A DNA stretch of 64,000 nt from Blastocystis sp. Blastoise (taxonomy: Eukaryota > Protista > Bigyra: Opalinata). The notes beneath the pieces were generated by a model, which had not been told where the DNA came from, searched no databases, and saw only the letters and a list, made by a program, of their open reading frames with translations. Where the stretch lies: contig JBBPEB010000026.1 in NCBI GenBank assembly GCA_039096225.1, positions 744,001 through 808,000 on the forward strand, read 5' to 3'. Below, one piece after another: positions 35,114-60,493 of the stretch (position 1 is the first letter of the stretch; every line of letters begins with the position of its first letter). The position numbers were made by a program, and so were the translations under genes.

Positions 35114-35190
35114 ATATCCTTTTATTAGTTATTTTATATTATATTCTCTCAATAATAATATTATATATATTTCTTAATTCTACTTTTTAC
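35114..35190 (+). other. U12-type AT-AC intron
   Basis: Donor ATATCCTTT, branch-like TTCTTAAT at 35171, 3' end AC; splicing gives KTEIY|SPISFAG in frame. Confidence 0.88.
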
Positions 35191-36853
35191 AGTCCTATTA
35201 GTTTTGCAGGCACATTAACGTATATGTATATATATACAAGAGATATATATGATGATGGATATTGTTTAGATAATCGAAGAGATAAATATAAAGTGTATAT
35301 TAAAGGTGATGGAGAAGTATATATATATTTATTTAATATATTATTATTATATATAGTATACTCAGAAATCCTTTTATTCATTTTCAACATCTCCTTCTCT
35401 TGATATATATACACAAGAATATCAATATACTTCTATTTGTCCTCTTTATACATTTATTCAATTACCTTCAAAAGTTAGAAATATAACTGTGAAAATAGAT
35501 TGTTTATCTGAAGATAATATTTGGTCCTCTTTAGAATGGAATATCACTACTATACCTTCTACTGAAATGTATATTAATTATTATTATTCTCTTATATATA
35601 TATAGTACATCTACAATAAAAGTAACTCATGATTCTCTTTATACTGCTGGTGATATTATTCCTATAAACATCAAATTCTTTGATATGTAATTATTTATTA
35701 TTCTTTATTTATATATTATTTATAGATATAATAATTCAGTAATTAATTTACAAAGTGTGTATAAAATATGTGATTATAGTTATGTAGAAGGTATATTTAA
35801 ATATATATAATTTGAATATAATTTTATATAGATCGAAATACTTATTATGATGTTATGAATCCAGATTCAATAAGTCTTCTTAGTACATGTTCTATACCTG
35901 CTAAAGTATCAGGATTCCATAAGATTTCATTGATTACATTAGTTTCTGGAAATATCTATGATTCTTATCTAAGTAAATATATTTATATTTATAATATATA
36001 TTATCTATAATAGCTGTTGTTCCTGGTACTCTTTATATTGCTCATACTGATATTCATGGTACTGGAATTGAATTTGTTTCTTATTGTGATTCTACTAATA
36101 TTTCTATTTGTGGAGATATCTATATGAATTTAAAAGTATTTATTTATTATTATTATTATTATATATTTATAATAGGATGAATATTTTAATTCATTGAATG
36201 CTACATATTATATTGAAGAAGGTGGATATTCAAAAGAAGATCCTTCTTTTTCTATATATAATCATGAAGGAGAATATATTGATATAGATATTCGACGAGC
36301 TGATACTTTAGAAGATACTCCTTTCACTGTAGATAAACATATACTCAATAATACGTATATTTAATATTATTATTTATATTTATTATTTATTTATAGTATT
36401 CATATTCATTATATTGTTGAAATGTCTTCTATTATTGGTCTTACTGAATCAGAATATCCTTATTTATATATACGTCTATTCTTTCAAAATAAACAAGATA
36501 ATCTATTCTCTAAAGATATTCCTGTTACTCTATCTTCTCTTCCTTATTCTCTATTCATGTATATATATTTTTTATTATTATTTTCAATATCTGTATAGAT
36601 TAACATCTCCTCTTAAATTTCATGTATCATCGATATTAAATGTCAATTTAGAAACTGATCCATTCTTTTTATTTCAAATATTTGATGAAAATCAACATAT
36701 TATTACGGGTCAACAATCTAATCTTAAATGGTATTCTATTATTATTATTATATATAAATATAAATGAATATATATATATAGGATAAATATAGATGAAGAT
36801 TATTATGATGGAATCATGTATATAGTTGAAACTACATCACCTGGTACTTATAA

Positions 36854-36918
36854 ATATCCTTTTATATATATATATATTAATAATAATTAAACACTATTAT
36901 TTTCTTTAATCTATATAC
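36854..36918 (+). other. U12-type AT-AC intron
   Basis: Donor ATATCCTTT, branch-like TTCTTTAAT at about 36902, 3' end AC; splicing gives PGTYK|TIPHLP, in frame with the downstream ORF MPILDISV. Confidence 0.88.
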
Positions 36919-38050
36919 AACTATACCTCATCTTCCTACTGCTCGTAATTATACGTTTATATTATTATATAATAATATGCCTATATTGGATATATCAGTG
37001 ACAATTACTACATTCACATGTTTAAAGTATTCTTTATTATCAACCTATTCAGGAACATTCAGTATGGGATTTGTACCTGAAATAAGAAGAGAATTAGATG
37101 TTATTGTTAAAGATATTCATAATAATGAAATGTATATTTATTTTTATATATTATTATTTATTATTATATAGTCCTATTCCTATAAATCAACAATTCAATT
37201 TAACTTCTTCTCCTCCTCTTCTCTATTCTTATACTCTCAATAATAATCATATCCATGTATATATATAATCATATATAATTTATAATATTTATATAGTTTC
37301 TAATAGATTCTCCTCTTCATCTTTCTTCTTATCGAGATCTATATACTATTACTATTTCTACATCCTTTGAAGATCAACCCTATATAGAAATACTTACTAC
37401 TACTGCTTATGCTTATCCTAATTTGAGTATATATATAATATATAATATATAATAATATTATTATATAGATCTTCTTGGATCTCCTTCTTATTTACTTTGT
37501 CCTGATGAATTAACTACAGGAATAGAATTCAATTGTACATTTCATCCACGAGATATTTATGGTAATGATATTAACCCTACTTATATTCAACCATTCTTAA
37601 AATCAACATTGATTGATTCTAAGGGTAATAATCTCAATGTATGTGATTTACCTTATTGTACAGGGAATAAGCCAGCTATCTTTATTTTTGATCATAATAC
37701 TATTTATACAAAAATGTATTATATTGATGCTGATACATATACTATAACATTTTCTCTTGAACAAGTTCATTATGAACAACAATTTCAATTGATTATTTCT
37801 CCATCAATTATGGACCCTCAACAATCATTTATTCATTTCCCTTCGAATAATAATCCTATTCCTGTTCCTAATTATGAAGATTATGGAAAAAATGGTATTT
37901 ATTATTTATTTTTATTATTATTATATATATAGAATTATTAGATGATGAAGGAATTAATAAAAGTATATATTTATATTATTATAGTTATTATTTATATATA
38001 TAGCTTATATAGCTGGTAATCAAATTTTCATTCATGTTCATCTCTTTGAT

Positions 38051-38113
38051 ATATCTTTTATATTATTATTTATATATATTTTATAATATAAATATTTTTT
38101 TCTTAATAATCAC
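38051..38113 (+). other. U12-type AT-AC intron
   Basis: Donor ATATCTTT, branch-like TTCTTAAT at about 38100, 3' end CAC; splicing gives HLFD|SFNNTIEED in frame. Confidence 0.82.
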
Positions 38114-39155
38114 TCCTTTAATAATACAATAGAAGAAGATATATCAAAAGAATTATATATAGAAATATATAAGAATGAAACTCGTATAGAAACTGATAGG
38201 TATATATATTTATATTATTATTATAATTATTATATAGTTATGCAATATTAATTTATGGAAATGTATATGTATTTTCTTTATATCATATTATATTATATAT
38301 AGATAATAAATAGATCAGTTTTATTATTAACAGTATATACAAATGATTTTATATATATTATAGGACAACAACATTTTTATATAAAGGTATGTATTTATCT
38401 ATATATATATTTATTTAAATTATTCATAGTTTTATAATTAGTTTATATAGGATAGGAAAGAGTTTCCATATATATATTATAATGATTAATTTTTTACATA
38501 TTATCTATTATATTATTAAAATTGTACTATGTCATATTTAATTATAATATTCTTCTTGTTTGGTAGATATTTAGAATTAGTTGATTTACAGATATCTTTT
38601 CTAGTAGAGAATAATAAAATATAAATAATTCAACATTAGTTTTTTATAAAAATATAATCTTTATTATGTTAATGATAGGTTGTAAAACGTTTCAGATATT
38701 ATCTATTTTATTTATATATGTATAATAATCTATAATTGATTTAAATAAGACATGTTACACAAGAAATGTTTATAAATTGTGAATCTCATCTTAATAAATA
38801 ACTATACTGATTATATATTTTTATTCTGTATAAGATTTATATCTTAAGCAGAATGCTATTTTATTAATATAACTGACAAATATATTTAATTGAAATCATA
38901 GTGTGTTAAAATAGCACGGTTTTATCTCTGTAACATCTAAATATATATGTTGTAATTAAATAATTCATGCTAAAAACTATATAATATATTTATAAATTAA
39001 TTGATAATCAAATAGACTTTTTGTAAAGAAAAAGAGTAATTTTATAATTTTATTAACCTCTGAAAACAAAGAATTTTATATAGATTCTTATAATAGTAAT
39101 AATATATTGACTATTATAATTCAAAAATAAAACAATACATGTAAAAAAATAAAAA

Positions 39156-39228
39156 TGCCCCAGATAAGATTTGAACCAGCGACAATAACCATTATAACTA
39201 TAGCGCTGACCAACTATACCAACAATTC
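39156..39228 (-). ncRNA. Degenerate tRNA-like (A-box/B-box) element 1
   Basis: The reverse complement contains TGGTATAGTTGGT (A box) and GGTTCAAATC (B box) at tRNA spacing, then a T-run; the stems do not pair. Confidence 0.6.
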
Positions 39229-39511
39229 TCTCAATTTTTTGTTTTTATATAATATATATAATAAATTTAAATATAGCTAAATCTTCAAATTTTTATATTC
39301 ATTATCTTTCATAACATTTATGTCAGTATAGACATGCTTAGAATAACTATTAAATAGAAATTATTAATTTTTGAAAATAAATTGTCTATTGATGTGGTGA
39401 TAATGAACTCAAAAAGAACACCTCAGTGATGTAAACGTTTTTTAAATACTAAAAATGACGCAGAGTTGATTGAATCATTATAAATAGTTGTCAAAAAAAT
39501 TTAAAAGAAAA

Positions 39512-39583
39512 TGTCCCCTATAAGGATCGATCCGTCGACCATGTAAAAATTTTATGCGCATAAACCATTCGACCAAATACCCC
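39512..39583 (-). ncRNA. Degenerate tRNA-like (A-box/B-box) element 2
   Basis: The reverse complement contains TGGTCGAATGGT (A box) and GGATCGATCC (B-box variant), then TTTT; the acceptor stem is unpaired. Confidence 0.5.
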
Positions 39584-41229
39584 TTATATAATATTTATCA
39601 TCAAGTCATATAATAATTATAAAACCAGTGACTACTAACCTTTTTTTATTTTTCCCTTTTTAAACATAAAAATAATATATTTTACAATATAAATATTATA
39701 AATGTGTTGTGTGACTTATTCTACATGTAAAATACATTTTAAAACCATTTTTAAAGGCTATTAAAAAACATTTTGTCTGAAGTATTGTTTTTTAAAATCT
39801 GACTTTTGTTCATACTGTTGTTTTTTGTTTGGTTTTTGAAAATAATTATTTTAATATGCTTTTCGTTTATTTTTTTTTATTACTAGTCAGGGTGTATCTG
39901 TAGAGTCCCTACAAGACTACTTCGTGATATTTAACAAAAACAAAAACTTTTTAATTACATTATTATTTTTTATAATATTATTTTAGAGTTTATTGACAAT
40001 ATTATTCATTATAACACATAAATAATACTATTTGAAATAGCTTAAAAAAAGTATATAAACAATTGACTATTGTCACAAAATATTTTTATTTGTCACCCAA
40101 CTTAACACGAATAGTCAAACATAGGAATCATACTTGTTGTTATTTGATGACTTATATACTTTTCAGTCATGTATCTGTCACAACATGTGTCACAAAAAAT
40201 ATTTTATTTGACTTATTTTCAAATAGTCATACATTATATATCAAAATAATACGTTTTTAGTCAAAAACTGTCACGTCATAATATAATAGTCAATGAATGA
40301 ATTATCTTTTTTATGTCACCCGGTCCTTTTTTCATGAAAAGTGTGTAAATCGACGTGTCTTGATGAGCTGAGTTTGAAAATATTTTTTTTATATTTTTAA
40401 AATTAAAAACAAAAAAGTTATTTATCATTTTTCATTTTTGTGTCACAAATTTTGCTGACAATTGCGACGCCGCAAAAAAAAAGGGCCTTTTGGAAGTCGC
40501 TGTATATATTATTATTGCATTCAACAAAAAGAATGAAACCTATAAGTTATTTTCTTTTAATCGATAACAAATTATGTATTTGTTTTCAAAATATACATGC
40601 AATATACAAAAAAAAAAATAACATTTTTGAAAAAAATAACTATCATCTATTATTTAAATTATACTATTCTGTAGTATTCATTAACTTTCATTTTATTTAA
40701 TCTATATTTTAAGAGATATTTTAATAAAAAGACAATTAAAATGAAGAAATTTATTATATTTAACATCATTAAATGCAAATCAGAAGGTCATTCGATAGAA
40801 TGAAATGCGACAAAAGTGTTTCAAAGATAATGGATTCAATAAGATCTATTATATGGTTATAAAAGAGAAATGATACATTTTATTCTATTCTTTATTTTTA
40901 ATTATAATATAAATATATACTTATTGACTATACATTCCTTGAGCATATAAATCTAGTTATTATAAGACCATTCAAACAAATTAATTCCAACTTTCAACCG
41001 ATTTCCAAACTGAATAACAGTAATACATACGAGATATTGAATATTTATATCAGAAAATTGCTTGTTATAATAAAAACATCAGTGAAAATGGTCTTATGAG
41101 TGTTTTCTTTATTGAGAAAATAATCCAAATTATTCGGATAAAAAATGAACTAGAAACAGCATTCAACCTAAGATATTTCTACACATTTACGTTGTAATTC
41201 TTCTTAAATTACGATATCATCCTTTGAAG

Positions 41230-43104
41230 ATGCAACAGTTATTATTTCTCTTTATCTTCGTGTCCTGTATATATATTTCATGCAGGTAATTTATAATGTC
41301 TATATTGATTTAGGTGCATTATGTGTTCTTTCTGAGGGCAATGAATTAATAAAAGTGAAATACGAGCAGTATTGTTTTGTAGGAAAGGAAGAAGTTTGGA
41401 TTATCTATGGACTTGTCAATAATATTCGAACTCAATTCTTTAAAACTAAGTGTTCATCAAGAGACTCTATATACAATGGAGAATTCTATGTGAATAAAAC
41501 TGACTCTATGATTTATGAAGCTACATTCACATTATCGTATTTGTTTCGATTATTTTTGTTTAAATGTTTAGTTCTTCATCTGGAACTGATGGATATCTAG
41601 CTATTTATGATGACTACGATACATTAGTGATGAAAGTTTCTGCTCATGGCTTGACAAGCAGAACTACATTTTTTTCATGTATTTATATATATATTTATTT
41701 TACATTTTTATTATAGAAATAGTATAAATTATATTAATGTATAATTTTCATTAAATAATATAGTATTCATTTATATTTTATATATATATATATATATAGT
41801 ATTTCATCCAATATCTCAACATGATTCTGTTTCTTATAAATCGGATAATGTGGATTCTGATTGGATGACGAATACTTATGATTATTCTAATTGGTCGAAA
41901 ATCAACTTTGGCCAATCAAAAGAGCCTTCAGAACAAGTACAGTATTATATAAAGGAATTTGATATATCGAATCTATATACATATGCTGCTTATACACTTG
42001 GATTATTATATACTGGCGAATGTTTTATTTATTTAAATGGATATTTAATTTGGAATGCTAATAAGTATATATTTATTGTGATAAAGTTAGTATTTTTTAT
42101 ATATTTATTTATTTATTTATTTATTTATTTATATATTATTTATTTATTGATATTTATTTATTTATATATTTATATATTTATATATTTATTGATATTTATG
42201 TATTTATTTAATTATATATTCTATATATATATTCTATATATATTCTATATATAGGACAAATACACAAGAAATGATCTATTCAAAGTATATATATATAATA
42301 ATAGAAATAATAAGAATTATATATATATAGAATAGTATTATCGACAGCTGCTTTGTTGGAACACAATCGACTTTCGATTTCTGTTTCATCTCCATCTGCC
42401 AATCAATATCTTGATATGTACATATCCCTCTTTTATTCTAACGAAGATGAACGTATATATATTTTAGTTATTCTTTGAATATTCAATTACATATATTCTT
42501 TATTTCATTTAAACTATTTTTGTTTCATATTATTCTAAAAAATAGTGAACGATATTTATTATTATGTATATATATATTTATATATAGAATGTGCCTATAC
42601 ATTAGATAAATTTTCTCTTTCTTCTTCTTCTTCTTCTTCTTCTTCTTCTTCACTTTCAAATATTATGGATTTTAAGGTATTAACAAGATACTCAGACAAT
42701 TTTTATAATACTACTGCTATTACTTTTACTATCCTTCTTAATAATACGTATATATATGCTTTATTTTTCACTATACATATAATAAAATTTATTTTTGTTT
42801 TATAGTTTTTTCTATTTATTACTATGAATTGAATTATTTTATATAATATTTATAAATATATTATTATATAAATACTAATGAAAATCTTAATATAGATATA
42901 TTCAAATTAATGATTATATTATGTTTGAAGGAACAATTCTTGGTGCGTCACCTTGTTCGTTTGATTTAACTGGTAGAAATAATGATGACGAAGAATGGAC
43001 TATATTGGACGTTAAAGAGGATTATCCAATCAGATCTTATTCCAGAGAAACACAACTATTTGCAAATACAAAAGCTTATAGTCAATATCAATTTAAAGTG
43101 AATC

Positions 43105-43168
<64 letters not shown>

Positions 43169-43761
43169 TTATTAGTCTTATCATTATAATATATATATAT
43201 ATACATATATAAAGAGGTTTGTACGGGTACAAAAATATCTTTATCGGATATTTACCTTCGCACGTGCGGCCAATCTTCTAAAGGACTGATATATCCTGCA
43301 AATAATTATGATTTCGCAATGAATATACCGATTCCCGTGGTTATGCCTCTTTATTCAGGATATTCAAGTATTCATGTATCTCCAGATCTTCCCACGGGAA
43401 TTCATCTAAATAGGAATACTGGTCTTCTTTATGGAACTGTATTTATTATGTTTATTATTATATTTATTATGTTTATTTTCATGTTTATTATATATATTAT
43501 ATTTATTATATTTATGTTTATTATTATTATTATTATTAGCCTACAAGTGTTTCGGAGAGTGTATTATATACATTTACAGTTGGTTCACTTCCGATATCAA
43601 CTCAAATGTTTATCTCTGTTCATTATTGTCAAGGAGTTCTAGTTAAGATTTACCGTGATTATTCCAATAAAGCGTCTCTTAGCGAATCATTTTCTCTCTA
43701 TAATCAATTACCCAATCAATATTCATTTATACAAGAACCTTATATTAAACCTAGAAATGGA

Positions 43762-43839
<78 letters not shown>

Positions 43840-44491
43840 TAGATATATTTGATGTGTGTCTTCCTAAAACGGATTATATACTTGATCTTCATCTATATTC
43901 AATGAGTGGGTCAACATCATGGGCAGACAATAGTTATTTCGCGGTATATTTGGCGCCAAATACAAATAGAGTCAGTTATAATCCCTCTGATTTATCCAAT
44001 TATATTCAAATATTACGATGTCGATATGATGTTATGTTAACAAATACTTATTCTTTCTCTAGTATATATATTAATAATTATACTATATATAATACTATAT
44101 ATAGCTAATTTTCTTCTTAGGGGAGGGGACCAATGGCGGTATTCTTCTTCTTTCCCGCCATCAAATTGGATAAATCCCTCTTTTGATGACTCCAAATGGG
44201 AGTTAATATCCGTTTCAGAAACCCCCATCCCTCCAACAGCTCATTTTTACCGCCATTCTATTCAATTTAATAGTACTATATATACAAATACTAAAGATAT
44301 AATTAATCTATTTATATCCTATAAAAGTGGAATTATAATTTATATTAATGGAGAAATTGTGTTCTCTAATAGAATAAAAGAGTATATATATATATATATA
44401 TATAGTTATATATATATTATATATATATATATATAGTATATCTCCAGATACTCATCCTTCGTCTTCTTATACAGATATTATATATAGAAGG

Positions 44492-44522
<31 letters not shown>

Positions 44523-47500
44523 ATAATATAATAATAATAAATATATAGAATTACTATTCCTCTGTCTGTATTCCATGAGGGAAACAATATCATTTGTGTC
44601 GCTGTAATCCCTGAACTTAACGATGAGGCGTCATATACGTTTGATATTGCCATGACCAATGTTGGAAATGGTCCTTCTTATTCTATTTATCATACTATAG
44701 CTACTCCTGGAACAGAGAATTTATATAGATATCAATATATGACAACGACTCATGTGAATATAACTGAACACCCCTCAATTTGTGTTTCTTCTTCAATAGA
44801 TGAGTATATATTCTAGTTACACATTATTCTATATATATATATCATTTTTGAGTTGATTTTATAATATCATTTATCTTCTATTAATATATATATATTATTC
44901 TTATAGGTTTTCATATACTACGTTTTATGCGATGACAGTTTCTTCGTCATCACACCCAATCACGTGGGATCTTCAGGCGCGTCATCATGTATTCAACACA
45001 AGTGATGACGAGTCCTGGATCACCTTAGATCATAAAGAATCTATTGATTATTCTTATCTCTCTTCTAGAAGATTATTCTTTACTATTTCTCCAATAAAGA
45101 GAGGTATATATAATGAATATCGTTTGACAAATATTATTTCTTCATCTTCTTCTTCTCCCAATATATATGATTTGAATAGTTTCGAGTTATTTACTTCTCC
45201 TTCTCCTCCTTCTCCTCTATTTAACTATACTTCAAAAGGATATACATATAAAGGTACATATATGGATCAAATGATCCCTAAAAATTATGTGTATTACCAC
45301 GATTATTTGACTATTCCAACTCTTCCAGAAGGAGTCTCTATTGATTCCATTACCGGTATGATTCGTGGAATTCCCGCGGTTATCCCAAATAGTTTTGAGT
45401 ATACTATACATGCAAAAGATGTCGAAGATCAAGAATATTCTCAACAAATAACCGTGGGAATTATGGATTGTAAAGAGAATCATGATTTATGGACTGTTCA
45501 ATATATATATAATAATAGAAATCGAGAAGTAAGTACCTCTTTAACATCAGAAACAGTATTCTTAAAGGCTAATGGTATTAATAATAAACGAATTAATAAT
45601 CCTTATAATGAGTATGTATATGTATTTTTTTATTTAGTTTATTATTATTAGTAGTAGACTATTTTAATGATTATTTTTATCACTTTTATAAATATATAAT
45701 AGAAATATATAATATAAAAATATAATATAAAAATATATTATAAATATATAATATAAATAAATGATACATTTCTATATATAGTTACGAGGATCCCTCAATA
45801 GATATTACACATGAACGTATATATACTGAATGTCTTCCTTTTGGTAGATATATACTTACTATTGAGGATGAAAAGAATGCATTAAAGTACCCTTATGGTT
45901 ATACTATATATAACTCAGAGAAATCATTAATATATACATCTTCTTTACATAAAGAAGAAACGAAGAAACAATATATTATCGACACAACCCTTCCTATACA
46001 GTCGGGAGTTACTGAATGGAGTTATTTGACATCCAATAGTTATCCTTCATCTGATTGGACGAAACGAAGTTATGATATCAAATCCTGGCCCGTTACAAAA
46101 GAATCAATTATTAAACATAAAGAACAATCAAATTTATTCTTAAGAACTTATGTATATATTTAAATATTATTTACTTATTATTCATTTTCGTTTTATACAT
46201 AATTTATAGTTAATAATCTATATATATTTTTTTACTTGCTATTATTTTATAATATATATATTATTTTTACATATTATTATGTCTATATATATTTATATCT
46301 TTTTTTGCTATACTTATTATTCTTTTAAATTATATATAGTTTTCATTATATAATATAACACGATATTCTTCTGTGAATATATATATGAAATGTAATAGTA
46401 AAGTGATTGTATATTTTAATAGTCATATTTTATATTCTTATTCTGATGGTACTTCAACTGTCCATGATCATCATTTCTCGATTCCATTACAAAATAATTA
46501 TATTAAAACAGAAAATAATATTCTTGCAATTTGGATTATGACGACTATAGTTCCTTCTGAAGGATATATATTTAATTTCGATATGTCTTATAATAATCAA
46601 CCATATTCAGCTGAATTCAGACAATTTCAGATTTACGATGAATCTTCTACAGAGACAAATCATACAGCTATGAATATGTTTGATAATAATTATTTAACAA
46701 GCACAATATTCACGGGAATGAAGCAGCAAGTGACACTAGTTTTTGGAGAGCATGTTATGCCTATATCACGATTCAATTCTTTATATATTCAGACACTTTC
46801 AGACAATATTCCAGAAACAATCACTATAAAAGGCAGAAATTCAGATTCTGAAGATTGGTTTTTATTATTAAATAAAGTATGTATATTTATATTGTTTTTA
46901 TTATTATATATTTTATTATTATATTTTTTATTATTAAATAAAGTATGTATATATTGTTTTTATTATTATATAATATATAATAATTTTTTCATTAGCATGT
47001 TATTGAACAGAAGCATACATTGGAATCTATTATCGATATTCCCATGGGAATGGTTATGTATACATATATATCTATTACATTTAATGAGGATCAAATCTCT
47101 ATACATAAGAGTGAAATAGTAGAATTATCTTTTGTTTATACTCCTTATTCTGGTCCTACATGCTATGCTATTGATGGATACTATGCTACAGGAGAAGATA
47201 CATATAGTTATAAATATTGTTCCAAAGGATATGAAGGACTAATGTCTAGATATTGTGATGGTATTGATTTTGAAAAAGAAGACAGTTCGAAGTGTATAGT
47301 ATCTCGTCCTAGTCATTTGAGTTATTCACAGTCTACTTATATTCTATATACATATACATCGTTTGATTCGATTGTTCCTTCCTATAATAATATTATTCAA
47401 ACATTTACTATTGAACCAGGTATATTTATACGATTAGTCTATTTATATATATATATGAAGTATAGAATAGTATTTTTATTTTTGCTTCTTTTTATAAGTC

Positions 47501-48406
47501 TATTTATCATATTCAATTTTTATTTATAATATTGTTCTGTTTTTATATCTATGAAAAATGATAAAAAAATAATAATATAAATATAATAATAATATAAATA
47601 TAATAATATAAATATAATAATATAAATAAAATAATATAAATAAAATAATAATATAAATATAATAATAATATAAATAAAATAATATAAATAAAATAATAAT
47701 ATAAATATAATAATCAATATATAATATAATAATAATATAATAAACATATAAATATAATAATCATATAACAATCCTATTCTATAGATCTTGCTGAGGGTTT
47801 AATATTTAATACAACAACTGGAGTTATTTCTGGAGTTTCAAAACAACTTAGTCAGTCTACTGAATATACTATAACAGGTAAGAATTCCCGTGGTTTTACA
47901 TCCTGTACACTATCTTTAATTGTTGAAAGTGGTATTTGTCCTTCATATAATGGTTTTAGTCAAACAAATTTATTTGAATATACAAGTATACCTTGTCCTT
48001 CAGGATATATAGGTATTCAAAATCGACACTGTATATTAAATTCAGAACAAACACAAATTATTTGGGGTGATATTGAAGATAATTGTACAAATATATGGGT
48101 ATATATAGGAACTATAGCTACAATTGTATTGATCATAGTACTGATAACCGTGGTTATTTTTACTACTTTTATCAATAAAAAACGAAAGTATATATAACAT
48201 TATTATTTTTTATTTTATTTTTTTATAATATCTATTGTTTATTCTATTTTTACAATATCTATTTTTTATTCTATTTTTACAATAATTAAAATTATTATTG
48301 TTTATATGCTAATAATCTATTTAAATATATATATATCTATTATAGGGCAGAAATAAAGCGATTACGTAGTCATATTGCAACTTCTGTGGTTAAACAAACT
48401 TATTAA
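41230..48406 (+). CDS. Large type I membrane surface protein with putative Ig (He_PIG-like) repeats and sugar-binding-like beta domains
   Basis: Signal peptide MQQLLFLFIFVS. Three repeats: 'LPTGIHLNRNTGLLYGT', 'LPEGVSIDSITGMIRGIP' and 'LAEGLIFNTTTGVISGV'. 'W...FDDSKW'-type motifs, a C-terminal TM 'WVYIGTIATIVLIIVLITVVIFTTF' and a basic tail; about 17 GT-AG introns. Confidence 0.85.
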
Positions 48407-48855
48407 ATAATTTTATATTCTTTTTTAAAACCATAATTTATATATTTTTTTAAAGCTACTATAAAGTTTAAAAAATATATTCGATGTTGTTTGTTAAAAT
48501 AACATTTAAAAAATATCCTTTTTTGTATCTCAAAAAAAAATATATATATAAAATAAAAACAAACAAATTTTTCATAAATAATTATATCTTATTATTACTC
48601 CTATTTGTATATTAATTATTAAAAAAAAAAACAATATTGTTCATACTATATATGACATACATATTTCAATATGAGCAAAGAATTAACAACAAATAATAAA
48701 GATAAGTATACAGTTAAAATTGTTAAAAATAAGATTTCATGAAGATAAACAATAATATTATATAAAAATAATCAGAGAGAGAAATTGATAAATATATATA
48801 TATTTATCAATAATATTATCCTATTGGAATACTAATTTATAAATATTTTCAATAC

Positions 48856-50429
48856 TTAAAAATCAATAAAGAAAGACGTACTTTGAATTTTGTTAATAGG
48901 ATATGAAATCTTTGGAATAGGATAAGGAGCCACACAATCTTCAAGTTCGTGAATATTATGAGCAAAGTATCGAGTTCCAAAAGCAGTTTTATTGTGATTT
49001 ATTAGTTTAATTAAGTCTTTTCGTTCTAAAGTGTGTTTGAAACAATACATTCTAGTTTGATCAATTTCATTTTCTTGATTTAAATAGGGACATAATAAAC
49101 TTGTTTCATGAACTATATAAACAGGACCTTTTAAAGGAGCAGAAAGTCGATATGCACGACCTTGATCACTTTTACCATTAGGACCATAATTATTGCCACT
49201 AAATAGTTTTGAATTAGAAAACCAACGAAAATGCAGAGTTCCAGATTTAATAGCTACAGGTAGAATGACTCTTAGAGCTCGTTGATCATCTCCTAAATCA
49301 GAATCATCAAGAGTAGCATAAAATAAATTTCGTAAAAAGTGTTGTGTACGTGAATTCCAATTATATATTAAAGCGTGGCCACTACAGAACCTCTCATCTA
49401 CTGTACGTGAGGTACATGAAAAATCGACATTTGTTGTTTTAAAAAAATCAAGTATCCTTGTACCTGCATTCGGTATGCAGAAAGATGAAGAAGAGTCTAA
49501 AGCTAACGTTGTTTTGAACGGAGTTAATCCTAAATATAAAACTCGAGTTCGAAATTGTCGACTTGATGTGTGATATTTAGTATTTGGTTTTCCTGGAAAT
49601 ACATGAAAAGGAGGTATAATCTTGATCATGATTCTTTTTGTTGATGTTATATTTGCTGAATCTGATGTAAAAATACATATTTGAATCTAGATATACGACA
49701 ATGAGTAATTCAAACATATATATTATATATATATTTATAGAAACTAGAATAGATTTGAAAAGATATATATTCAAATAGAGTAGTATATCAAAAGATGTAT
49801 TGTGAATACTTGATCATCAATTTGAGTCATTTTAAGAGCAGAACCATAAGCTTCTTTAAAATATTTTCTAGCTGAACTGGAATCTGTACTGTAAGCGAAC
49901 ATAATAACACCTTGCCCTTTCTTATCACGATTATCTAACGTTTTATAACCATGTGAATACCTTTCACTTTCATAATAATTGACAAATTCCTAAAAAAAAA
50001 TCAAAGATATTTATGTATATATGATCTTTTTTGTGAAAGTTAAAGTAAATGATATATTAGAAAAAAATAGAAAAAATATATAATGATACAAATAAATACA
50101 TCATTCGTAATCTGACGCGATGGGAGAGTTTTTGTGTTCTATAAATGATATTATACCAGTTAATGTGGAATATAAATACAGCTACAACGTTTTCAGTCAA
50201 CGTATCATTATTGAGAGTGTTTTTCATAGAGAAAAAAGCTCCATTAGTGGATTTGTTGCTTTTATAATTAATCTATAAATAGTTATGTTATTCATACATA
50301 CGAATAAGTGACATTATTTACATTCCAAATTGTTTGCATGCTTTCACACGTCATCATCAAATAATACGTTACTAAAGCCAAAAACAGAATGATCAATGTT
50401 TCCACACTGATGATGACAGATTTATTCAT
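48856..50429 (-). CDS. Type II membrane putative glycosyltransferase (GT-A / nucleotide-diphospho-sugar transferase-like)
   Basis: Anchor MNKSVIISVETLIILFLALVTYYLMM; 'TPFKTTLALDS' and 'DDQRALR' motifs; four GT-AG introns. Confidence 0.65.
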
Positions 50430-50519
50430 AATGTTATTTAACAAATAGAGGGTAAATGAGAGATATGGTATGAAACGTCAAAACCTGAAAATACTCGTTT
50501 TTTCTTTTCGGTTTTACCA

Positions 50520-50937
50520 AGAAGACTCTCTTGGAGTACAGACATTTCGAAAGTTTTTTTTTATTTTATTAATATTTTTTTAGGTTCTCAAAACGTAAAA
50601 CTAAATTTTTCTGGGGTAGGCTCCTTATCCTGAGTAGTAGATGACTAACCCTATTCAAGAAAATTCTCATAATTTCTTTTTATCGTTGTCCATGAAAACT
50701 CTTGATATTTATGAAAAATTCTTTAGGGTTAGTGAATTTTAAGAAACTGTAGAAACCATTTCGGGTTTGTGTTTTTTTTTATAGTATTTGCCACAAAGAC
50801 TCTTTTGGAGTACAAAATTGCTGAAAAATATTGTATTTATGGGTACCTTTAGGCACTTAAGACGTAGATAAAAACTCTCTTGTAGTATAGACAGTACTCG
50901 AAGTACAGTTTGGCGAACCCTGGCGTTGCCAACACTG
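50520..50937. mobile_element. Possible hAT-type terminal remnant
   Basis: The reverse complement of the right end reads CAGTGTTGGCAAC then CAGGGTTCGCCAA. Three degenerate ACTCTCTTGGAGTACA repeats and an internal inverted repeat are present; no matching left end was found. Confidence 0.4.
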
Positions 50938-51477
50938 ATTTTTCTTCAAACTTCATAATGAAAACAACTTTTTATTTTGTAGACTACTACAGTAATGTAA
51001 TTTTAATAAAAATACCCAAAATATATTAATATAAGAAAACACATAAAAGTGAAACTATTATTTCAAAAAACAAACAAAATTGTTGTTGAAATGAATTATT
51101 AATTGAGCAAATCTAAAAAGAATCGAGAAATTCTCTTACTCAATACTGTACGCCTTTCCTTTTATATATTTATTTAATGAAAAATACAAAATCAAATAAA
51201 AGAAGTAGATTAATTTGACTTTATACGTGCTATGTATTCATGATTTATAATATAAATCCGAAACATATGCTTTTAAGAGTTCTTAGGTTGACTATAAAAG
51301 TGAATATACTTAATAAAAGTCTAACAAAGAAAAAAGAAATAAATATTCGTGATTTTGATTGTGTATTTGACTGTTCCGTTTAAAATATTCATGGAAAATT
51401 TGTATGGTGAAAAGAAAAAAGTGTTTTGTATTTCTTTGCTTGTTAATCTTATTGATATTATAAAAGATTTGAGAAAT

Positions 51478-52740
51478 ATGGTTACCACGACAAAGTTAAC
51501 AGTTTCTAACAATGAAAGTGGATATTTTTCGTTGCCTATTTTTTTTGGTGATGTGCCTGGATGTAAAATACTGTATTGCAAGCCAAATAGTTTAAAGAAT
51601 GATGAAGATTCTAAGACTTTATTTGTCGCTAATTGTAATGATATTTCAGAAGGAGACTTTAAGAAATTATTTGGTAGTTATGGTGATATTGAAGATATTC
51701 AATTAGGAAAACTTGCTAAAGGAGATACGCAAGTTGCTTATATAAAGTTTTCTACAAAAGCTCAAGTTCAAAATGTAATAGATGCCATTCAATCAGAGTA
51801 TATATATATAATGTTTATTTATTATGTTGATAAAAATGATATAATTATAGAAATCCTCCTACTTTAGAACAAAAAAATACTCGAATTTCTTTTTTCCAAG
51901 GTATAAAAGTTTTATTTATTTTTTGATTTTTTTTTTAATAATAATATTATTTTTAATAATTATTTTTCTAAATAAGATTATTGGTTTGAATTATTATAAT
52001 AATATATAATAATATATAATAATATATAATAATATATAATATTTAGAATCCTTAACAGAATGTAGAGGCCAATATATGGATACAAAATCAATAAAAGAAC
52101 AAGCTTTTAAAACTATTAATGATTATAACGAACAAATGGAAGCTGTATATATATAATATATAATATATATATATATATATTCTTTATATTTTAAGATCTA
52201 TGAATATATTATAAATATTACTTTAGATTTTAATAGAATTTTTTGAGTTATATGTATAGAATATTAATAATAAACATAATAATCACTTTTAATATTAATA
52301 TAGAATATTATTTTTATAATACTCTTATATATATATATAGGAAGAGAATCAGCCTACAGTTGATGAAGATGGTTGGACTATTGTACGAAAAAAACGTTCT
52401 ATATATGATGATAATGAAGATGAACCTCCTCGTGTATTTAAAAAACCTAAAACTAAGGGAACTCTTCAAAATTTCTATAGGTATAGAATAATATTATTAT
52501 ATTAATCTGTTATAAAAGTGTTTATTATTCTTATTTATCATTTTTATTAACTATTTATTATTATTATTAACAATTTTTATATAATTATGAAACTATTCAT
52601 ATTCTCATTTAATGCTAATATATAGATTCCAAATTAGAGAAAATAAGCGTGATCAATTGATGAAACTTAGAGAACAATTTGAAAATGATAAAGAAAAGAT
52701 TAATAAGATGAAGAATTCTAGAAAGTTCAATCCTCTGTAA
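51478..52740 (+). CDS. RRP7: Ribosomal RNA-processing protein 7
   Basis: RRM 'KTLFVAN', 'DEDGWTIV' and C-terminal 'NFYRFQIRENKRDQLMKLREQFENDKEKINKMKNSRKFNPL*'. Confidence 0.93.
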
Positions 52741-53219
52741 TCATTCAGCATATCTCTGTGCTTATTTCTATATTAAAATGAATATGACTTATTTGATTGT
52801 TTGTTTATTTGTTATCTAATTATGTGTTTTTTTAATTCTTTAGTTTGTATTTCTTGTTGGATAAGAACTATCTAGTGTTTATCGTATATTAATTAAATCA
52901 ATTAACAATTTAACAAAGAGATTTTCTACATTGAATTATTTTCCTCTTCTATTTCTATAAATAAATCTACTCACTCATATCTTATGAATTGTTCCAGAGA
53001 CAAACAAAGCTATTTTACGCTATTTAACGTAAAAGTGATAAAAAATAGAATCACAAAATCAGAATATTTCAGAAAAAAAAGAAATTTTAATTGTTTTTCT
53101 TACCCATGAATAAAAGCGTAACTTCCGCTTTCATTTTCTTTTTTTCCATAATTCTAGTCACTTTTTACATTTTTTTTGATAACTATTTATCTTCATAAAT
53201 TAATTATTTGTTTTGATTC

Positions 53220-55064
53220 ATGGGTAGAAAGAAGAGAGAACAAATCAAAGAAGACTTTTGGTGTTACTATTGTGAAAGAGAATTTGAAAATGAAAAAACG
53301 TTGATGACCCATCAAAGTGCTCGTCACTTCAAATGCTCCACTTGCCATAAAAAATTAAATGATCTCGATGGTCTGATTAATCACATTGCTAATATTCATA
53401 AAGGAACTATTTCTGAAGTTCCTAATGCAATCAAAGGAAGAGAAGGCATTAAGATGTTTGTATTTGGTATGACTGGTATTCCAAAAGAACTTAAAATTGG
53501 TATAAACATTTTATTTTATTATTATTATTTTTTATTTTTAATAATAAAAAAAATAATAATATATATATTCATAATATATATATATATAGCTCATTATGCA
53601 AAGAAATATGGAGTCGATCCTAAGAATTTACCTTCAAGTATTTTACAATTAGTCAATGATTCGACATCTACTGTGGATATGAGTAATCAAAAAGAATTAG
53701 ATGATGCTTTATTAAAGAAGTTATCTGCAACTCAAACACCTATGATGCCTGCTATTCCTACAGCGTATATATATATAGTTATTATATATTTATTCTTTAT
53801 TTCTTTCTTTATTACATTTAGTATTATTATGTATATAAGTATACTATTCAATTCATATTAACATATTATACTATATATCTATGATTCTCTTTATATATAG
53901 AGCTACTTCTATTCCTTGGACCCCAACCCCTTATGCTGCTCCTGGATTCGTTCAACAACCAATGGCACCTTTTCAACAACGTATATTTATTTTATTTTAT
54001 TATATGTTATTTTATTATATTATATTTAATATATTTTATTTTATAGATATATAAATTATTTATTTATTTTATTATAATTTATTATAGATATATAAATTAT
54101 TTATTTATTTTAATATATTTTATTATAGATATATAAATTATTTATTTATTTTAATATATTTTATTTTATAGATATATAAATCATTTATTAATTTTATTAT
54201 ATTTTATTATAGATATATAAATGATTTATTTATTTTATTATATATTCTAATATTATAAATACTGTTATTCTTAATATACTATACTCTATAGCCTATATGG
54301 TACCCGGTTATGGATATGCTCCAAATATGTATATGCCGCCAAACCCTTATGGCGCGCCAGTGCGTCCCTCTATGCCCCCCACTATTCCACCAATGACATC
54401 TCCATTACCGAATCCATTAGCCAATCCATTTACTACTTCTCCTACTACTCCCGTTACTCCTACTCCTTCTATTCCTATTCCTTCTATTCCTAATACTACT
54501 TCAAACAATAATACTACATCTCCTACTATTAATAGTATATGAATAAATCATTTTATAATATATATATATTCTATATATATATTTTTTTGTTTTCTATGAA
54601 TTGTTATATATTTATTTTTCTATAGTGACTACGTTACCCATTTCTTCATTAACACCCTCATCCATTCCCGCCACTACACCCACTATTCCCGCCAAACAAC
54701 CTACTATTATCACAGAACCAGGAAAGAAACCTTATCAACTTATTTATGACAAAGAAGATATGTGCATGGTATATATATATATTATATTTATTTATTAATT
54801 TTTTTATATATTTATAAAAAATTATTATTATTAATAAAAAAATTATTATTATTAATAAAAAAATTATTATTATTAATAAAAAATATTATTATTAATAAAA
54901 AATTATTATTATTAATAAAAAATTATAAAAATACTATGATCTTTATATAGGAAGAATATAGAGCATCTTTTTCAAAATATATGTATGCAGAGAATACAGT
55001 ATTAAAAGCATTAAAAGAATTGGAAGATGAAAGTACAAATGTTCTCTCTAAATATCTTAGTTAA
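53220..55064 (+). CDS. ZNF207: BUB3-interacting zinc-finger protein (ZNF207/BuGZ/SUF4)
   Basis: 'MGRKK...WCYYCEREFENEKTLMTHQSARHFKCSTCHKKL...VPNAIKGR...VFGMTGIP', a Pro-rich middle and 'LIYDKEDMCM|EEYRA'. Confidence 0.93.
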
Positions 55065-55533
55065 ATAATTTTTATAATATATATATATATATATATTTCC
55101 AAACTTTATGTATATTGTATTTGTGTCTATTTTGATTGTTTACTCTATGGATCTAATTGTTGTTTTCAATCATTTTTGTTTGTTTAATGACGAGAAAAAC
55201 TATTTGAAATGATATATAAGTGAATCTTTAAATACAAATGCATAACGTAAAGCAAAAAACAAGGTTATAAAAATAAAGAAACAATACATTATTAATCCTA
55301 TTTTATTATTATTTCTTGATTTAGTTGCAACAACAATTTATAACAAAAAAAAAACATAGAGTCTATGATCCTTATTCCTTATTCATGATGAATTATATGA
55401 AAATATATTAATTCAGAAATATAATAAATTTTAGCTTTAATTTCATTAATATTCCGTGAATATTCATAAAAAAATATTTTAGAAATCTTGAATTGATAAA
55501 TCTTGAATTTATCTTTGGTTTTTGATTTTGAAA

Positions 55534-58345
55534 ATGAGATTATTAGATAAAAAGATACAAAAGGTATTAAGTCTTCAAACTACAAAGCCAGAAGTCTTGG
55601 AAGCACTTGATTCTTTTTCTGATTTTTTTGTTGCTACAGATAATGCTATTGATGCTCGAAAGAGCATGAGATTAACATTAGAAGGAATTGGTATCGATAT
55701 TTCAAAGAAGTTTTCTTCTGAATTACAAAGTTTTTTCCAAGTATATGTTCTTTTTATTAAAAAAGTTTTATTTGTTTATTACACATAATTTAAAGAGTGT
55801 TCGTGATAATAAAATTTTGTTATTTATAATAATTTAGATTCATTTTATGTTTTTATTTATAGGTATTTAATAATTTTTCAAAATCTCTGCAAGAAGTTGA
55901 AGAAACTTGTGATGAAATTGAACATAAATTAGATACGACATGGGATGAAGCGTCTCTTGTATATAATCATATTAATGAAACCAATGAAATGACGTATATA
56001 TTTTTATTTTTATTATGTTTATTATGTTTGTTGATTTTATTATGTTTTTTTTTTTTATTATTTTTATTATTTTCATATTTTTTTTTTATGTTTATTTTTT
56101 TATTTTATTATATTTATTTCTATTATTTATTATTTCTATTATATTTTTTATATTTATTATATTTATTATATTATTTTTCTTAATATAAATATATATTAAT
56201 ATATTATGATTACTTCTTTATTACTATCTTTCTATTAAATAATAATATTATATAGTATATTAATGGATACGCGCCGAAAGAAGATTTCTGAGTTTTTATC
56301 AAAATATTCGTTATCGGATGCTGAAGAAGCTATATTCTTAGATGAGAAAATACTAGATGATAATAATTATGAGTTTTTTAATATACATAATAAGACATTA
56401 ACAATACGTAAAAGTTGTGATGAATTATTAAAAGATCCTTATTGTATATTATCCTGTACTGTTCAGTTATTAGAACGTGTGTCTAGACAACAAGAGGAAG
56501 CTTATAAAATGCTATTTGCATGGACTCAAAAACAATTAGGTCAATTAACAAATTCAACTTATGTTCAAGATAATAATGATTTAAAGTTTTTATTCTTTCA
56601 AAAAGCATTTATTACGTTACGAGAACGTCCTTCTTATTTTGATCATTGTTTAGAATTATTAAATAATAGTCGTAAAACAGTTATTACTAAGAAATTCAAT
56701 GAATTACAACGTACGTGGAAACAAAGTAAAAAACAAGGTTTATATGTTAGTTTAATTAGTGATTTATTCGCATCTATTCATCAAATTATGGGATCTGAAG
56801 CTGAATTCTATCAAAGTGTACTTACAAATGAAAAGATAGGAGATGAGACTATTGCTAATAATAATAAAGATAATAATAATAATGATGTTATTATGAAGAA
56901 TATGAATTTATTAAAGAAATCTTTAGATATTGTTTTCTCTGGTATTTTATCACCTCTAAATGTATATATATATAGTTGTTATTCATGTTTCTATATTCTA
57001 TATACACTATTTTTATACTGAATAGATATACTTTATAGTCTATATTTATATATAGTCAATTATATATATATATATTCAATTATATATATATAGGATATAT
57101 TAGAAGAAGCAGTAATGTATGAGACTAAAGTTCAAGATTTATTTACTCTTCATCAATTATTAACATTTTATTGTCATTCTTATGAACGATTCTTATCTTT
57201 AGATGGACCTCTCTTAACTATGCTGAATCAAGCTGAAATCTCTATTTGGGATACTATATGTAGTCTTATGTCTGAAAAAGTGTCCAAATCGAATTATAAT
57301 ACGTTATTATTCTCTGTAGATGTCTCACCACTTCCAGTAGTTCAAGAATTTGTGTCTATTATGACATCCTCACTTATTACGTATGTATATATTGTTTTTT
57401 TTTTAATTATATTTATTATTTATTTAATAAATAATTATAAGTTTTTTTTATATATATTTTATAAATAATTATATGCTGTTTTTTATTTTTTTAATAAATA
57501 ATTATAAGCTAATTTTTTATATATTTTCTAAATAATTATAAGCTGTTTTTTATATATTTAATAAATAATTATAATTTCATTATTATTATACATCATAAAA
57601 TTATAATATTCATTAAATGTTTTCTCTATATATAGTTTTGATACGTCATTATTAGAAAGTAATAAAAAAACAGAATTATTTAATCAATTAGCTGAAGCTA
57701 CTATTTCTCCTTTATTAGTAGTATGTCAAAAGAGTTTTCGTAGTATTGATTCAACTGAAACACCTATATTTATGATTAATACACTTGAAGAATTAAGAAA
57801 ATTATTAGTTACATATTCATTTACTGTAAAATGGGTTATGAAATGTGCGGATGAATTAGAATATTGGATGGATAAGATTATTCATGAAAAAGTATTTTGA
57901 AATGTTATATTTTTTTAATTTTATTATTATTTTATTTTTTTATGATAGTTTATTCTTATTACATTAGTATATCAACTATATTTATATAACAAAATAGGTT
58001 ACTGGATTATTAAAACAATCAAACTTATTAGATGCTATTCAATATTTAGAAACAAAACCAAAAGATCAACCATTAAGTGCTTATCCTAATGCATCGCCAT
58101 TAATTATTGAAAGAGGTAGTCAAGCATTAGTTTCGAAAATGTATGCTTCTATTGCTCCAGAGTATTCCAAAATCACAGCTAAAGTTAGAGAACGAGCTCG
58201 TCTTGAAGCTTCTCGTTCTATTGCAGATGCTTATGAAAAATTATATAATGCTATTCATGATCCTTATAATGGATATATAAGTCCTGATAATATTATGATT
58301 CATACACCAAAACAAATACGTACATTACTTGATTGTGATAATTAA
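55534..58345 (+). CDS. COG6: Conserved oligomeric Golgi complex subunit 6
   Basis: 'FLSKYSLSDAEE', 'QEEAYKMLFAWTQ', 'LRERPSYFDHCLE', 'IFMINTL' and C-terminal 'HTPKQIRTLL' match the COG6 pattern. Confidence 0.85.
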
Positions 58346-58750
58346 ACTATTTTAAAACCAATCGGTTTTATTAATTATAACTTTTTTAAATAATTTTATT
58401 TAATATTAACTGAACTCTTACTAGTATTGCTCTTCTTTTTTTATTTTGAATACTTATATATTCTTATTATTCTATTCTTAAGGTCATTTTTTCTTGTAAT
58501 TGTTTTTTCCAACTCTATCCTGGTTTCGTTCTATTCACTATATCAATCGTCGTCTATAGTATATGTTGAGCACATTTCTTTAAAGTTTAAGAAGATCATT
58601 GTAACATTTTCTTGCTTTTTTCTAATAGATTATCTTTTCATGATTATTTCAATTGTTTGACTTAAAAAGTTCATATAATCATAGAAAAATAATATATTAT
58701 TTTATTCTGACTTAGTTGTGTTATTTCTTCACTGTATTGAAATTAAAACA

Positions 58751-59375
58751 ATGTCAGCTAACGATAAATTGATGGAATTCTTCAATGAGGTTGACAGTCT
58801 TCCTGTTCCAAAACCAATTACAACACCTCTTGCTTCATCTACACCAGTTGTATGTATTTTATTATTTATATCATAGACTATATGTTTTCTAATTTCTTAT
58901 AGCTTATTTCTACTAGTTATAAAGTATCTACTCCACAAGAAGATTGTATTTTTTTATTTTATATACTATTTATTCTATATTATTTAGTTTCTCAATTGAG
59001 AACAGCATCTGTGTATGATTCTATGAAGAAATAAAAAGAAATTATTATATATAGACCTGTATCACCAATTCCTCAGATTCAACCGTATTTTATTTTAATT
59101 CTCTTTTCTATAATTTATTTTGTTTATATATAATTATATAGTTCTACAATGGTTACAACAGACAATGTAAATGCACCAACACAAAAACAAGTAGAACGAC
59201 AACAAAGTGGATATAAAGTGAATCCTGTATTTTTATTATTATGTTTATTATGTTTATTATGTTTATTATGTTTATTATGTTTATTATATTTATTATATAG
59301 GCTAAATTACGAGTTTCTGGAGATAAGAAATTCTTCCGTCGTGCTGCTGGTCACACATGGCAAGATCCATCATAT

Positions 59376-59461
<86 letters not shown>

Positions 59462-60029
59462 GTTACACCATTACTATTAATATTATTATTATTATTATTA
59501 TTATTATTTGAGATATTATATTCTTTAACAATAATACATTAGCAGATTGGCCTGATAATGATTTCCGATTATTTATTGGTAATTTAGGGAAGAAGACTAA
59601 AGACGATGTTTTAACTGCACTATTTAGTCAGTAAGGAGCTAATTTTATATATTGATTATTATTGATCTATAGATTTGTTTTTATCTTTAGATATTTTTAT
59701 ATATTTTTTATTTTTTTTCATCTATTTTTCTTTATTTTAATTATTTTTTTAACTTTCTCTATTCTTTTTATTTTTTTTTAAATTTTACTACATATTCTAT
59801 ATTCTCTCCTATTCTCTATATTCTCTCTTTATTTTCTCTTTATTTTCTCTTTATTTTCTCTTTATTTTCTCATATTTTCTCTTGTATTTTCTATTTTATC
59901 TATAGTTATCCTTCATTTAATCGTGCCAAAGTAATTTGGGATAAACGAAAGGATAGAACGAAAGGATATGGTTTTGTTTCCTTTATGGATCCATTAGAAG
60001 CTATTCGAGCTATGAAAGAACAAAATGGT

Positions 60030-60072
<43 letters not shown>

Positions 60073-60493
60073 TAATATTGTATTCTTTATATATTACTAT
60101 TCAATACTATATTATATTTTATGTATATTAAGTTTCTATTCTTTAAATATATATATAATACATTTAAAAAAATGTATATTAAAAATATGTAATTAATTTT
60201 CTCTATTATTCAATATATATATAAAGGTAAGTTTTGTGGTGATAAACCTATGATGATTCAAAAAGGACAATGGAAGAAGAGAGATGAAAAAGTGATATCC
60301 TTATATATATATATAAAAGTATATTAATATAATAAACATATTTGCTTAATTTTAATATAATAAATATATTAATAAACTATTTTTAATATAATAAATATAT
60401 TTTCTTAATTTATTGTTTTACGTGAAAATTGATGAACGAAAATTAAAGAAAAGTTTCAAAGAAATACAAGAAAGCAGAGGATCTGTTTTTTAA
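58751..60493 (+). CDS. RBM42: RNA-binding protein 42 (RRM, spliceosome-associated)
   Basis: 'RRAAGHTWQDPS|LADWPDNDFRLFIGNLG', 'YPSFNRAKVIWDKRKDRTKGYGFVSFMDP' and 'AMKEQNGKFCGDKPM'. Confidence 0.93.
59372..59537 (+). other. U12-type AT-AC intron in RBM42
   Basis: Donor ATATCCT, branch TTCTTTAAC at 59521, 3' end AC; splicing restores the conserved WQDPSLADW. Confidence 0.92.
60295..60421 (+). other. U12-type AT-AC intron in RBM42
   Basis: Donor ATATCCTT, branch-like TTCTTAAT at about 60402, 3' end AC; splicing gives WKKRDEKV|VKIDERKLKK in frame. Confidence 0.85.

Follow-up and report, generated by a model that had tools for sequence, protein, structure and literature searches.

The closest described relative of the system reported here is the minor (U12-type) intron complement of Blastocystis ST1. 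In this subtype, 346 of 35,412 introns (~1%) were assigned to the U12 type, typically with AT-AC ends; all four minor small nuclear RNAs (snRNAs) and seven specific proteins were found in ST1, and ST7 also has both (Gentekaki et al. 2017, PMC5608401). A later survey counted 253 minor introns in ST1 (median length 39 nt), 77% of them AT-AC, saw no bias against phase 0, and placed the top densities of minor introns outside Amoebozoa at ~0.55% (Larue and Roy 2023, PMC10639083). The enrichment in Physarum polycephalum dwarfs all others known (Larue, Elias and Roy; bioRxiv 10.1101/2020.10.12.336362). Here, we describe five AT-AC segments in a stretch of 64,000 nucleotides from Blastocystis sp. 'Blastoise', the Russian-tortoise isolate Rus-B (GenBank assembly GCA_039096225.1, contig JBBPEB010000026.1, positions 744,001 to 808,000). 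The whole stretch is called the window below, and its positions are numbered from its first letter. The genome of this isolate was presented in a preprint as 33 contigs of 33.3 Mb with 23.1% GC and 8,547 genes, with longer introns in the tortoise clade and 40-42% protein identity to human subtypes (PMC10690189); its text contains neither 'U12' nor 'minor splic...'. For the genus, AT-AC minor introns in abundance have been published before; for this strain they are undescribed. Our analysis makes it very probable that the five segments are genuine U12-type AT-AC introns and that such introns are a genome-wide trait of this strain, numbering a few hundred to ~1,000.

The five segments were read directly from the sequence and are as follows:

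35114-35190, + strand: U12-type AT-AC intron 1, 77 nt, phase 0; donor ATATCCTT, branch site TTCTTAAT, branch A 14 nt from the terminal AC.
36854-36918, + strand: U12-type AT-AC intron 2, 65 nt, phase 2; donor ATATCCTT, branch site TTCTTTAAT, branch A 10 nt from the AC.
38051-38113, + strand: U12-type AT-AC intron 3, 63 nt, phase 0; donor ATATCTTT, branch site TTCTTAAT, branch A 8 nt from the AC.
59372-59537, + strand: U12-type AT-AC intron 4, 166 nt, phase 2; donor ATATCCTA, branch site TTCTTTAAC, branch A 10 nt from the AC.
60295-60421, + strand: U12-type AT-AC intron 5, 127 nt, phase 0; donor ATATCCTT, branch site TTCTTAAT, branch A 14 nt from the AC.

The consensus of the class is RTATCCTY, and the donors comprise three copies of ATATCCTT and one each of ATATCCTA and ATATCTTT. 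In all five introns the branch A is placed 8-14 nt before the 3' end, where ~8-20 nt is expected for the class. The same distance is 10-14 nt in six further AT-AC introns modelled on contig C4.

Genes were modelled with our own exon-chaining gene finder, which scores codons by log-odds and splice sites by donor and acceptor weight matrices (trained on the window in iterations), adds a length term and can include a U12 class as an option. Spliced models were translated locally for the frame check, and homology searches used single exons. The finder returned 15 genes with 136-137 introns in the window and chose all five segments as frame-keeping introns, which gives an AT-AC share of 3.7% (5 of 136, by our own gene models). 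A first-pass annotation, made from the letters of the window alone, had described the segments as starting with ATATC(C/T)T and ending in AC, with a branch motif near the AC and the reading frame restored; direct reading and the gene finder agree with it on each point. It had also counted ~130 introns in the window, ~4% of them AT-AC, and since the finder gives 136-137 introns and picks all five segments, both the denominator and the share are sound.

The specificity of the signals was assessed with decoy motifs. Under strict motif definitions, the real signals yielded 5 window introns and 6 more from an independent 200 kb (C4:1000001-1200000), while four strict decoy sets with reversed or shuffled donor and branch motifs gave none in the window and 0-1 in the 200 kb. 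These definitions were used instead of loose ones, with which the reversed decoy produced 7 calls against 16 for the real motifs. The loose motifs had given a sixth call in the window (48855-48904, minus strand), which was absent from the strict run, and a copy of ATATCCTT at 12051 (minus strand) falls in intergenic DNA; both were discarded.

The boundaries were compared with homologs and paralogs. Introns 4 and 5 belong to one host gene:

58751-60493, + strand: RBM42-like RRM protein, own model, ~236 residues, 9 introns.

The exon that follows intron 4 (59539-59628) aligns through its residues 2-30 to residues 374-402 of human RBM42 (PDB 6qw6_R), with its first residue opposite 373; the exon upstream of intron 4, with 23 residues, is too short for such an alignment. 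In a lysine-methyltransferase homolog on C4, the residues flanking an AT-AC intron (C4:1070466-1070546) fall without a gap on positions 45 and 46 of PDB 2pxx, as read from extended alignments (query 19-60 to chain 2-43 and query 1-40 to chain 46-85). On C4, three MFS-transporter paralogs in tandem, ~50% identical by eye, share the codon position of an AT-AC intron (180, 106 and 93 nt). A second AT-AC position is common to two of them (87 and 291 nt), the model of the third ending before it, and is kept in a fourth paralog on contig C29. The bodies of these introns are unalignable while their donor and branch boxes are kept, which is what purifying selection on splicing signals predicts. At the first position, the AT-AC introns lie at L016:4765-4944, L016:8223-8328 and L017:1758-1850; the fourth paralog has an apparent GCATAT...AG intron there instead (L031:1866-1990, minus strand), with a TTCTTTAC box still present ~20 nt upstream. 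This intron may represent a U12-to-U2 class conversion. Long (AT)n and (ATT)n microsatellites were observed in intron 4 of the RBM42-like gene (window 59380-59510) and in a neighbouring GT-AG intron (60030-60070); microsatellite-filled introns fit the 12% of low-complexity DNA reported for tortoise isolates.

Introns 1-3 share the other host gene of the window:

33838-38489, + strand: gene 7, own model, ~1,190 residues, ~27 introns, the 5' part upstream of 33838 being uncertain.

Its product is a lineage-specific repeat protein rich in Tyr, Ile, Ser and Thr and resembling a surface protein. The exon preceding intron 1 (34787-35113) has 15 copies in the genome with 97-100% amino-acid identity, distributed over 10 contigs and in several cases near contig ends; the 14 places outside the window are on C8, C13 (three), C14 (two), C16, C20, C23, C26 (three), C30 and C31. 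Five copies have the same 77-nt intron 1 letter for letter, those outside the window being at C13:1011307, C13:1168237, C20:1054483 and C23:350157, and the others have near-identical versions. A second AT-AC intron, ~4.2 kb from intron 1, recurs alongside the intron 1 copies. To judge from these identities, three of the five window introns come from a single, recently amplified family, whose AT-AC introns are copied with it. The exon had no relative among 1.84 billion protein representatives, and a metagenome scan with it found nothing. A search of transcript-derived proteins gave two weak matches, which were rejected as unrelated, one being on a 50-Mb contig of another organism. Because the deposited proteins of this genome are in the parent collection of the representatives, we infer that the 15-copy family is missing from, or mis-framed in, the deposited proteome.

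Word content of RNA data was used to follow gene 7 further. In run X1, which is probably RNA, 0.57 of the sampled 31-mers of 34900-38400 were present (348 sampled words, standard error ~0.027). Our model expects 0.587 if all modelled introns are removed and 0.672 if the three AT-AC introns are retained, so the observed share fits removal of all introns, given complete exon coverage. The poly-A gut metatranscriptome X2 contains one third of the words from this part of gene 7, which indicates that gene 7 or its copies are expressed. As for length, many introns of the window, notably in gene 7, measure 35-60 nt; there is a tail to 400 nt, and the median is ~100 nt both in the window and in the C4 sample.

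Minor introns usually make up under 0.5% of the introns of a genome. The whole assembly was searched with patterns joining donor, branch box and terminal dinucleotide, each with a reversed-pattern control:

ATATCCTT, 25-55 nt, TTCTTAAY, 4-14 nt, AC: 63 matches, control 19.
ATATCCTT, 25-55 nt, TCCTTAAY, 4-14 nt, AC: 31 matches, control 3.
ATATCCT, 56-86 nt, TYCTTAAY, 4-14 nt, AC: 88 matches, control 46.
GT-AG version, GTATCCTT ... TTCTTAAY ... AG: 6 matches, control 4.

The excess over the control is ~44 and ~28 for the first two AT-AC patterns, compared with ~2 for the GT-AG version. With the former in excess and the latter at background, AT-AC dominates almost completely. The gene finder likewise called no intron of a strict GT-AG U12-type class in 264 kb (the window and the C4 sample), where a GTATC[CT]T donor occurs in one of 475 GT-AG introns. 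The first-pass annotation had seen no GT-AG U12-type donors in the window and had proposed a bias to AT-AC; the finder's calls agree with the first statement, and the bias extends to the whole genome. The major-type donors are themselves very uniform, 224 of the 475 beginning with GTATATA.

Two estimates of density were obtained. In the unselected 200 kb of C4, 6 of 350 introns are AT-AC U12-type, or 1.7% (95% Poisson range 0.6-3.7%), and 1.7% of roughly 58,000 introns extrapolates to ~1,000. The genome-wide patterns catch 4 of the 11 modelled introns, and their excess of ~110, scaled accordingly, gives ~300 (range 160-1,000), roughly 0.5%. The genome would therefore hold roughly a few hundred to ~1,000 minor introns, or 0.5-1.7% of all introns. 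The higher share in the window is due to clustering in two genes, one of which is from the 15-copy family. Of the expansion that had been suggested from the window, what remains is a density well above the usual level; the 4% is a local value, raised by clustering and a multicopy gene. The proposed shift of the branch site towards AT is also partly upheld, in that TTCTTAAT is used somewhat more often, but the canonical TCCTTAAY is strongly enriched too (31 against 3).

The snRNAs of the minor spliceosome were sought by an Infernal search of the whole assembly (33.3 Mb, 34 contigs, 22.5% GC; the window is on contig C17), a check that had been proposed together with the five introns. It gave:

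U11: 62.9 bits, above the gathering score.
U6atac, C21:544821-544937 (L003:1501-1617), - strand: 63.8 bits, above the gathering score, single gene.
U12: 46.8 bits, short of the 53-bit gathering score; the match spans the whole model.
U4atac candidate: 29.7 bits, E = 0.045, found at a relaxed threshold only and weak by the covariance model alone.

The 5' end of U11 is canonical and starts with AUAAAGGGC. The branch-recognition sequence of U12 is canonical as well (consensus AUGAGUAAGGAAA), and by inspection its pairing with TTCTTAAT needs two G-U wobbles. The branch variant, whose fit to U12 had also been marked for checking, is thus complementary to it, and as the snRNA is canonical, TTCTTAAT pairs through the wobbles and not via a changed U12. 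The first 13 nt of the U4atac candidate pair with nt 37-49 of U6atac (12 Watson-Crick pairs and one G-U), which is canonical stem II, and its nt 58-65 pair with nt 23-30 of U6atac over 8 bp, which is canonical stem I. These stems were obtained by direct helix search; folding of the whole-length duplex was uninformative. Relative to human, and set against the Rfam consensus, stem II is changed on both strands, and this co-variation argues that both RNAs are under selection. The candidate also carries an Sm-like site. On the basis of the two stems, the two-sided change and the Sm-like site, we take it as real, and the search thus accounts for U11, U12 and U6atac together with a U4atac supported by its pairing with U6atac.

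The motif ACTTCTAATCA stands at -58 to -65 upstream of all four snRNA genes (L001:1443 for U12, L002:1689 for U11, L003:1682 for U6atac and L025:1696 for U4atac). It is absent from the 264 kb formed by the window and the C4 sample, and ~48 copies are expected genome-wide by composition. As a candidate, it may be the proximal sequence element in snRNA promoters of Blastocystis. On the strand of the U4atac candidate, ~450 nt upstream of it, there is a tRNA gene (66.7 bits, L025:2078-2149, minus strand). Among the proteins specific to the minor spliceosome, the ubiquitin-like domain of SNRNP25 was found with 45.9 bits over two exons. One C-terminal exon of PDCD7 scored 25.3 bits, just under the 27-bit cut-off, and by this match PDCD7 is probably present. 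The weaker of two zf-U11-48K matches (C13:542854-543354, L027:1400-1900) has two CHHC zinc fingers in tandem with an intron splitting them, a layout like that of GTSF1.

With these components, splicing would follow the known pathway. With AAAGGG at its 5' end, U11 would recognise the ATATCCTT donor. U12 would recognise the branch site by its canonical GUAAGGAAA, pairing with TCCTTAAY by Watson-Crick bonds and with the commoner TTCTTAAT by means of the two wobbles, and U4atac/U6atac would enter next, for catalysis. The AT-AC trait would in this way continue the published ST1 pattern, and amplification of the 15-copy family would multiply its introns.

Several observations weigh against the interpretation of the segments as introns of an active minor pathway that is widespread in the genome. 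The word 'active' would rest on sequence conservation and on the machinery, and not on spliced reads. As listed above, U12 lies below its gathering score and the U4atac candidate is weak by the covariance model. Both matches of zf-U11-48K look like other proteins (a TRM13-like protein and the two-finger GTSF1-like protein), and do not demonstrate 48K. The sole U6atac differs from its family at nt 12-15, the box for pairing with donor positions +5 to +8, where it has GCCG in place of the consensus AAGG. Over the +5 to +9 box it reads GCCGAGAGA instead of AAGGAGAGA, with 3 of 5 pairs possible in the canonical register, and no second copy of U6atac was found by pattern search. In mammalian work from 1998, Incorvaia and Padgett reportedly found U6atac G14 and G15 to pair with donor C5 and C6. 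As the donors here still read ATATCC, the canonical helix would keep the same 3 of 5 pairs with GCCG. This box is a feature of the machinery rather than of the intron class, and we do not treat it as grounds for exclusion. As to abundance, the density estimates come from our own uncalibrated gene finder and one 200-kb sample, and 5 of the 6 AT-AC introns behind its 1.7% are in the three tandem paralogs, which leaves effectively three independent positions. Finally, with the U12 class switched off, the finder replaces intron 1 by a frame-keeping GT-AG intron at 35128-35192, with a poor GTT donor and four added codons, so that frame alone does not force the U12 reading there.

This substitute favours an explanation by ordinary U2-type introns whose GT-AG boundaries lie elsewhere, or by segments that are coding in part, the AT...AC ends being an artefact. 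Without the U12 class, frame-keeping GT-AG introns are also offered for intron 3 (38016-38162, the sole substitute) and intron 4 (59350-59512). The former loses coding sequence on both sides, however, and the latter costs upstream residues, while introns 2 and 5 have no substitute at all. Gene 7 then breaks in two at 36890/36977, its score falling from 353 to 301 (198.5 + 102.5), and the model of the RBM42-like gene stops inside segment 5, at 60327, with a fall from 59.1 to 23.2. Since the exact combination of donor, branch box and spacing is moreover present at 11 sites, against 0-1 for the decoys, we consider the artefact very improbable. Still less credit is due to the idea that the motifs meet by chance in DNA of 22% GC, or that the hosts are decaying pseudogenes. 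The loose reversed decoy (7 against 16) and the non-zero genome controls (19, 3 and 46) speak for chance; the strict decoys, with 0-1 calls against 11, and the genome-wide excess (63 over 19 and 31 over 3) speak against it. Decay is contradicted by long open frames in all hosts, by intron positions kept in diverged paralogs and by the share of gene 7 words in the gut poly-A metatranscriptome. Chance and decay are already largely refuted.

If the AT-AC introns were instead removed by the major spliceosome, as members of the rare U2-type AT-AC class, the minor snRNAs would serve few or no introns, and the altered donor-pairing box of U6atac might suggest such a weakened minor pathway. Neither the ATATCCTT donor nor a branch box fixed near the 3' end is found in U2-type AT-AC introns. 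Here, both the donor and a branch box 8-14 nt from the 3' end are present and are enriched together, the recognition sequences of U11 and U12 are canonical, and the co-variation in stem II of U4atac/U6atac argues for selection, which makes removal by the major spliceosome highly unlikely. A different proposal accepts the U12-type introns and holds that they have undergone a true lineage-specific expansion far beyond the level of the genus, to several per cent of introns and second only to Physarum. The 3.7% in the window, the 1.7% in the unselected 200 kb and the 15-copy family, with several AT-AC introns per copy, point that way. Against it, the scaled pattern counts reach only ~300 (160-1,000), the 200-kb figure reduces to three independent positions, and ST1 is already at 0.98%, so that we regard an expansion on this scale as doubtful. 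We give a similarly tentative status to a wider proposal, in which minor splicing has been remodelled in tortoise-clade Blastocystis. It would combine a complement that is essentially all AT-AC, a density of at least 1.5% (with only Physarum then ranking higher), a sole U6atac without AAGG, multiplication through the 15-copy family and class switching between MFS paralogs. The preferred reading remains that of genuine U12-type AT-AC introns, a few hundred to ~1,000 of them across the genome.

The first-pass annotation had warned that standard gene predictors would mis-model such genes, and this was confirmed in the one case that was checked. The deposited protein WA158_007284 (383 residues) is the C29 MFS paralog. 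Its model reads through the U12 donor into the intron and then stops, and its C-terminus, AYPPRYICLF-stop, results from translating GC followed by ATATCCTCC. The true intron in this gene is C29:1182775-1182876 (L031:1313-1414, minus strand), which ends in TTCTTAAC, 5 nt and AC. The exon after it stays in frame and encodes residues conserved in the other MFS paralogs. The deposited model also skips an upstream exon at ~L031:1709-1753 (minus strand). A search for contigs encoding WA158_007284 returned none. The public annotation of a reference-quality genome thus mis-models genes with AT-AC introns, and re-annotation allowing AT-AC junctions is warranted; with such genes mis-modelled, comparisons of gene content between tortoise and human Blastocystis could be biased.

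A second, deeply diverged Blastocystis lineage with an AT-AC-dominated complement means that the trait either predates the split or arose twice. The pair of tortoise and human Blastocystis genomes allows gain, loss and class conversion of minor introns to be dated. The altered U6atac box, if confirmed, would be a natural experiment on how far the pairing of U6atac with the donor can relax.

The complement described here can be set against three known systems. Like Physarum, this strain is a protist lineage above the usual ceiling of 0.5%. Physarum has tens of thousands of minor introns with transformed signals, whereas the introns of this strain number in the hundreds, make up no more than a few per cent of introns overall and retain classical signals and AT-AC ends, which falls short of a massive expansion. 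With the AT-AC U12 introns of animals and plants they share the ATATCCTT donor, the branch box near the 3' end and the terminal AC, as well as U11, U12, U4atac and U6atac with canonical recognition sequences in U11 and U12. They differ from them in a density several-fold higher and in that AT-AC is the rule here, compared with about a quarter there. To our knowledge, the host genes found here (the RBM42-like gene, the MFS transporters, the lysine-methyltransferase homolog and the lineage-specific repeat protein) are not classic minor-intron genes.

The closest system remains Blastocystis ST1, from which this strain departs in several respects. Its AT-AC introns measure 63-291 nt, compared with the ST1 median of 39 nt, in line with the greater intron lengths described for the tortoise clade. 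Introns of the GT-AG subtype, about a quarter in ST1, stay at background here. The branch box is TTCTTAAT more often than TCCTTAAY, and part of the count comes from the 15-copy gene family. The changed donor-pairing box of U6atac may be a further difference. In other respects the two agree. They belong to the same genus, and ST1 has ~1% minor introns, mostly AT-AC, with all four minor snRNAs. Phase 0 is not avoided in ST1, nor is it here, where the 11 modelled introns are divided 4/3/4 among the three phases.

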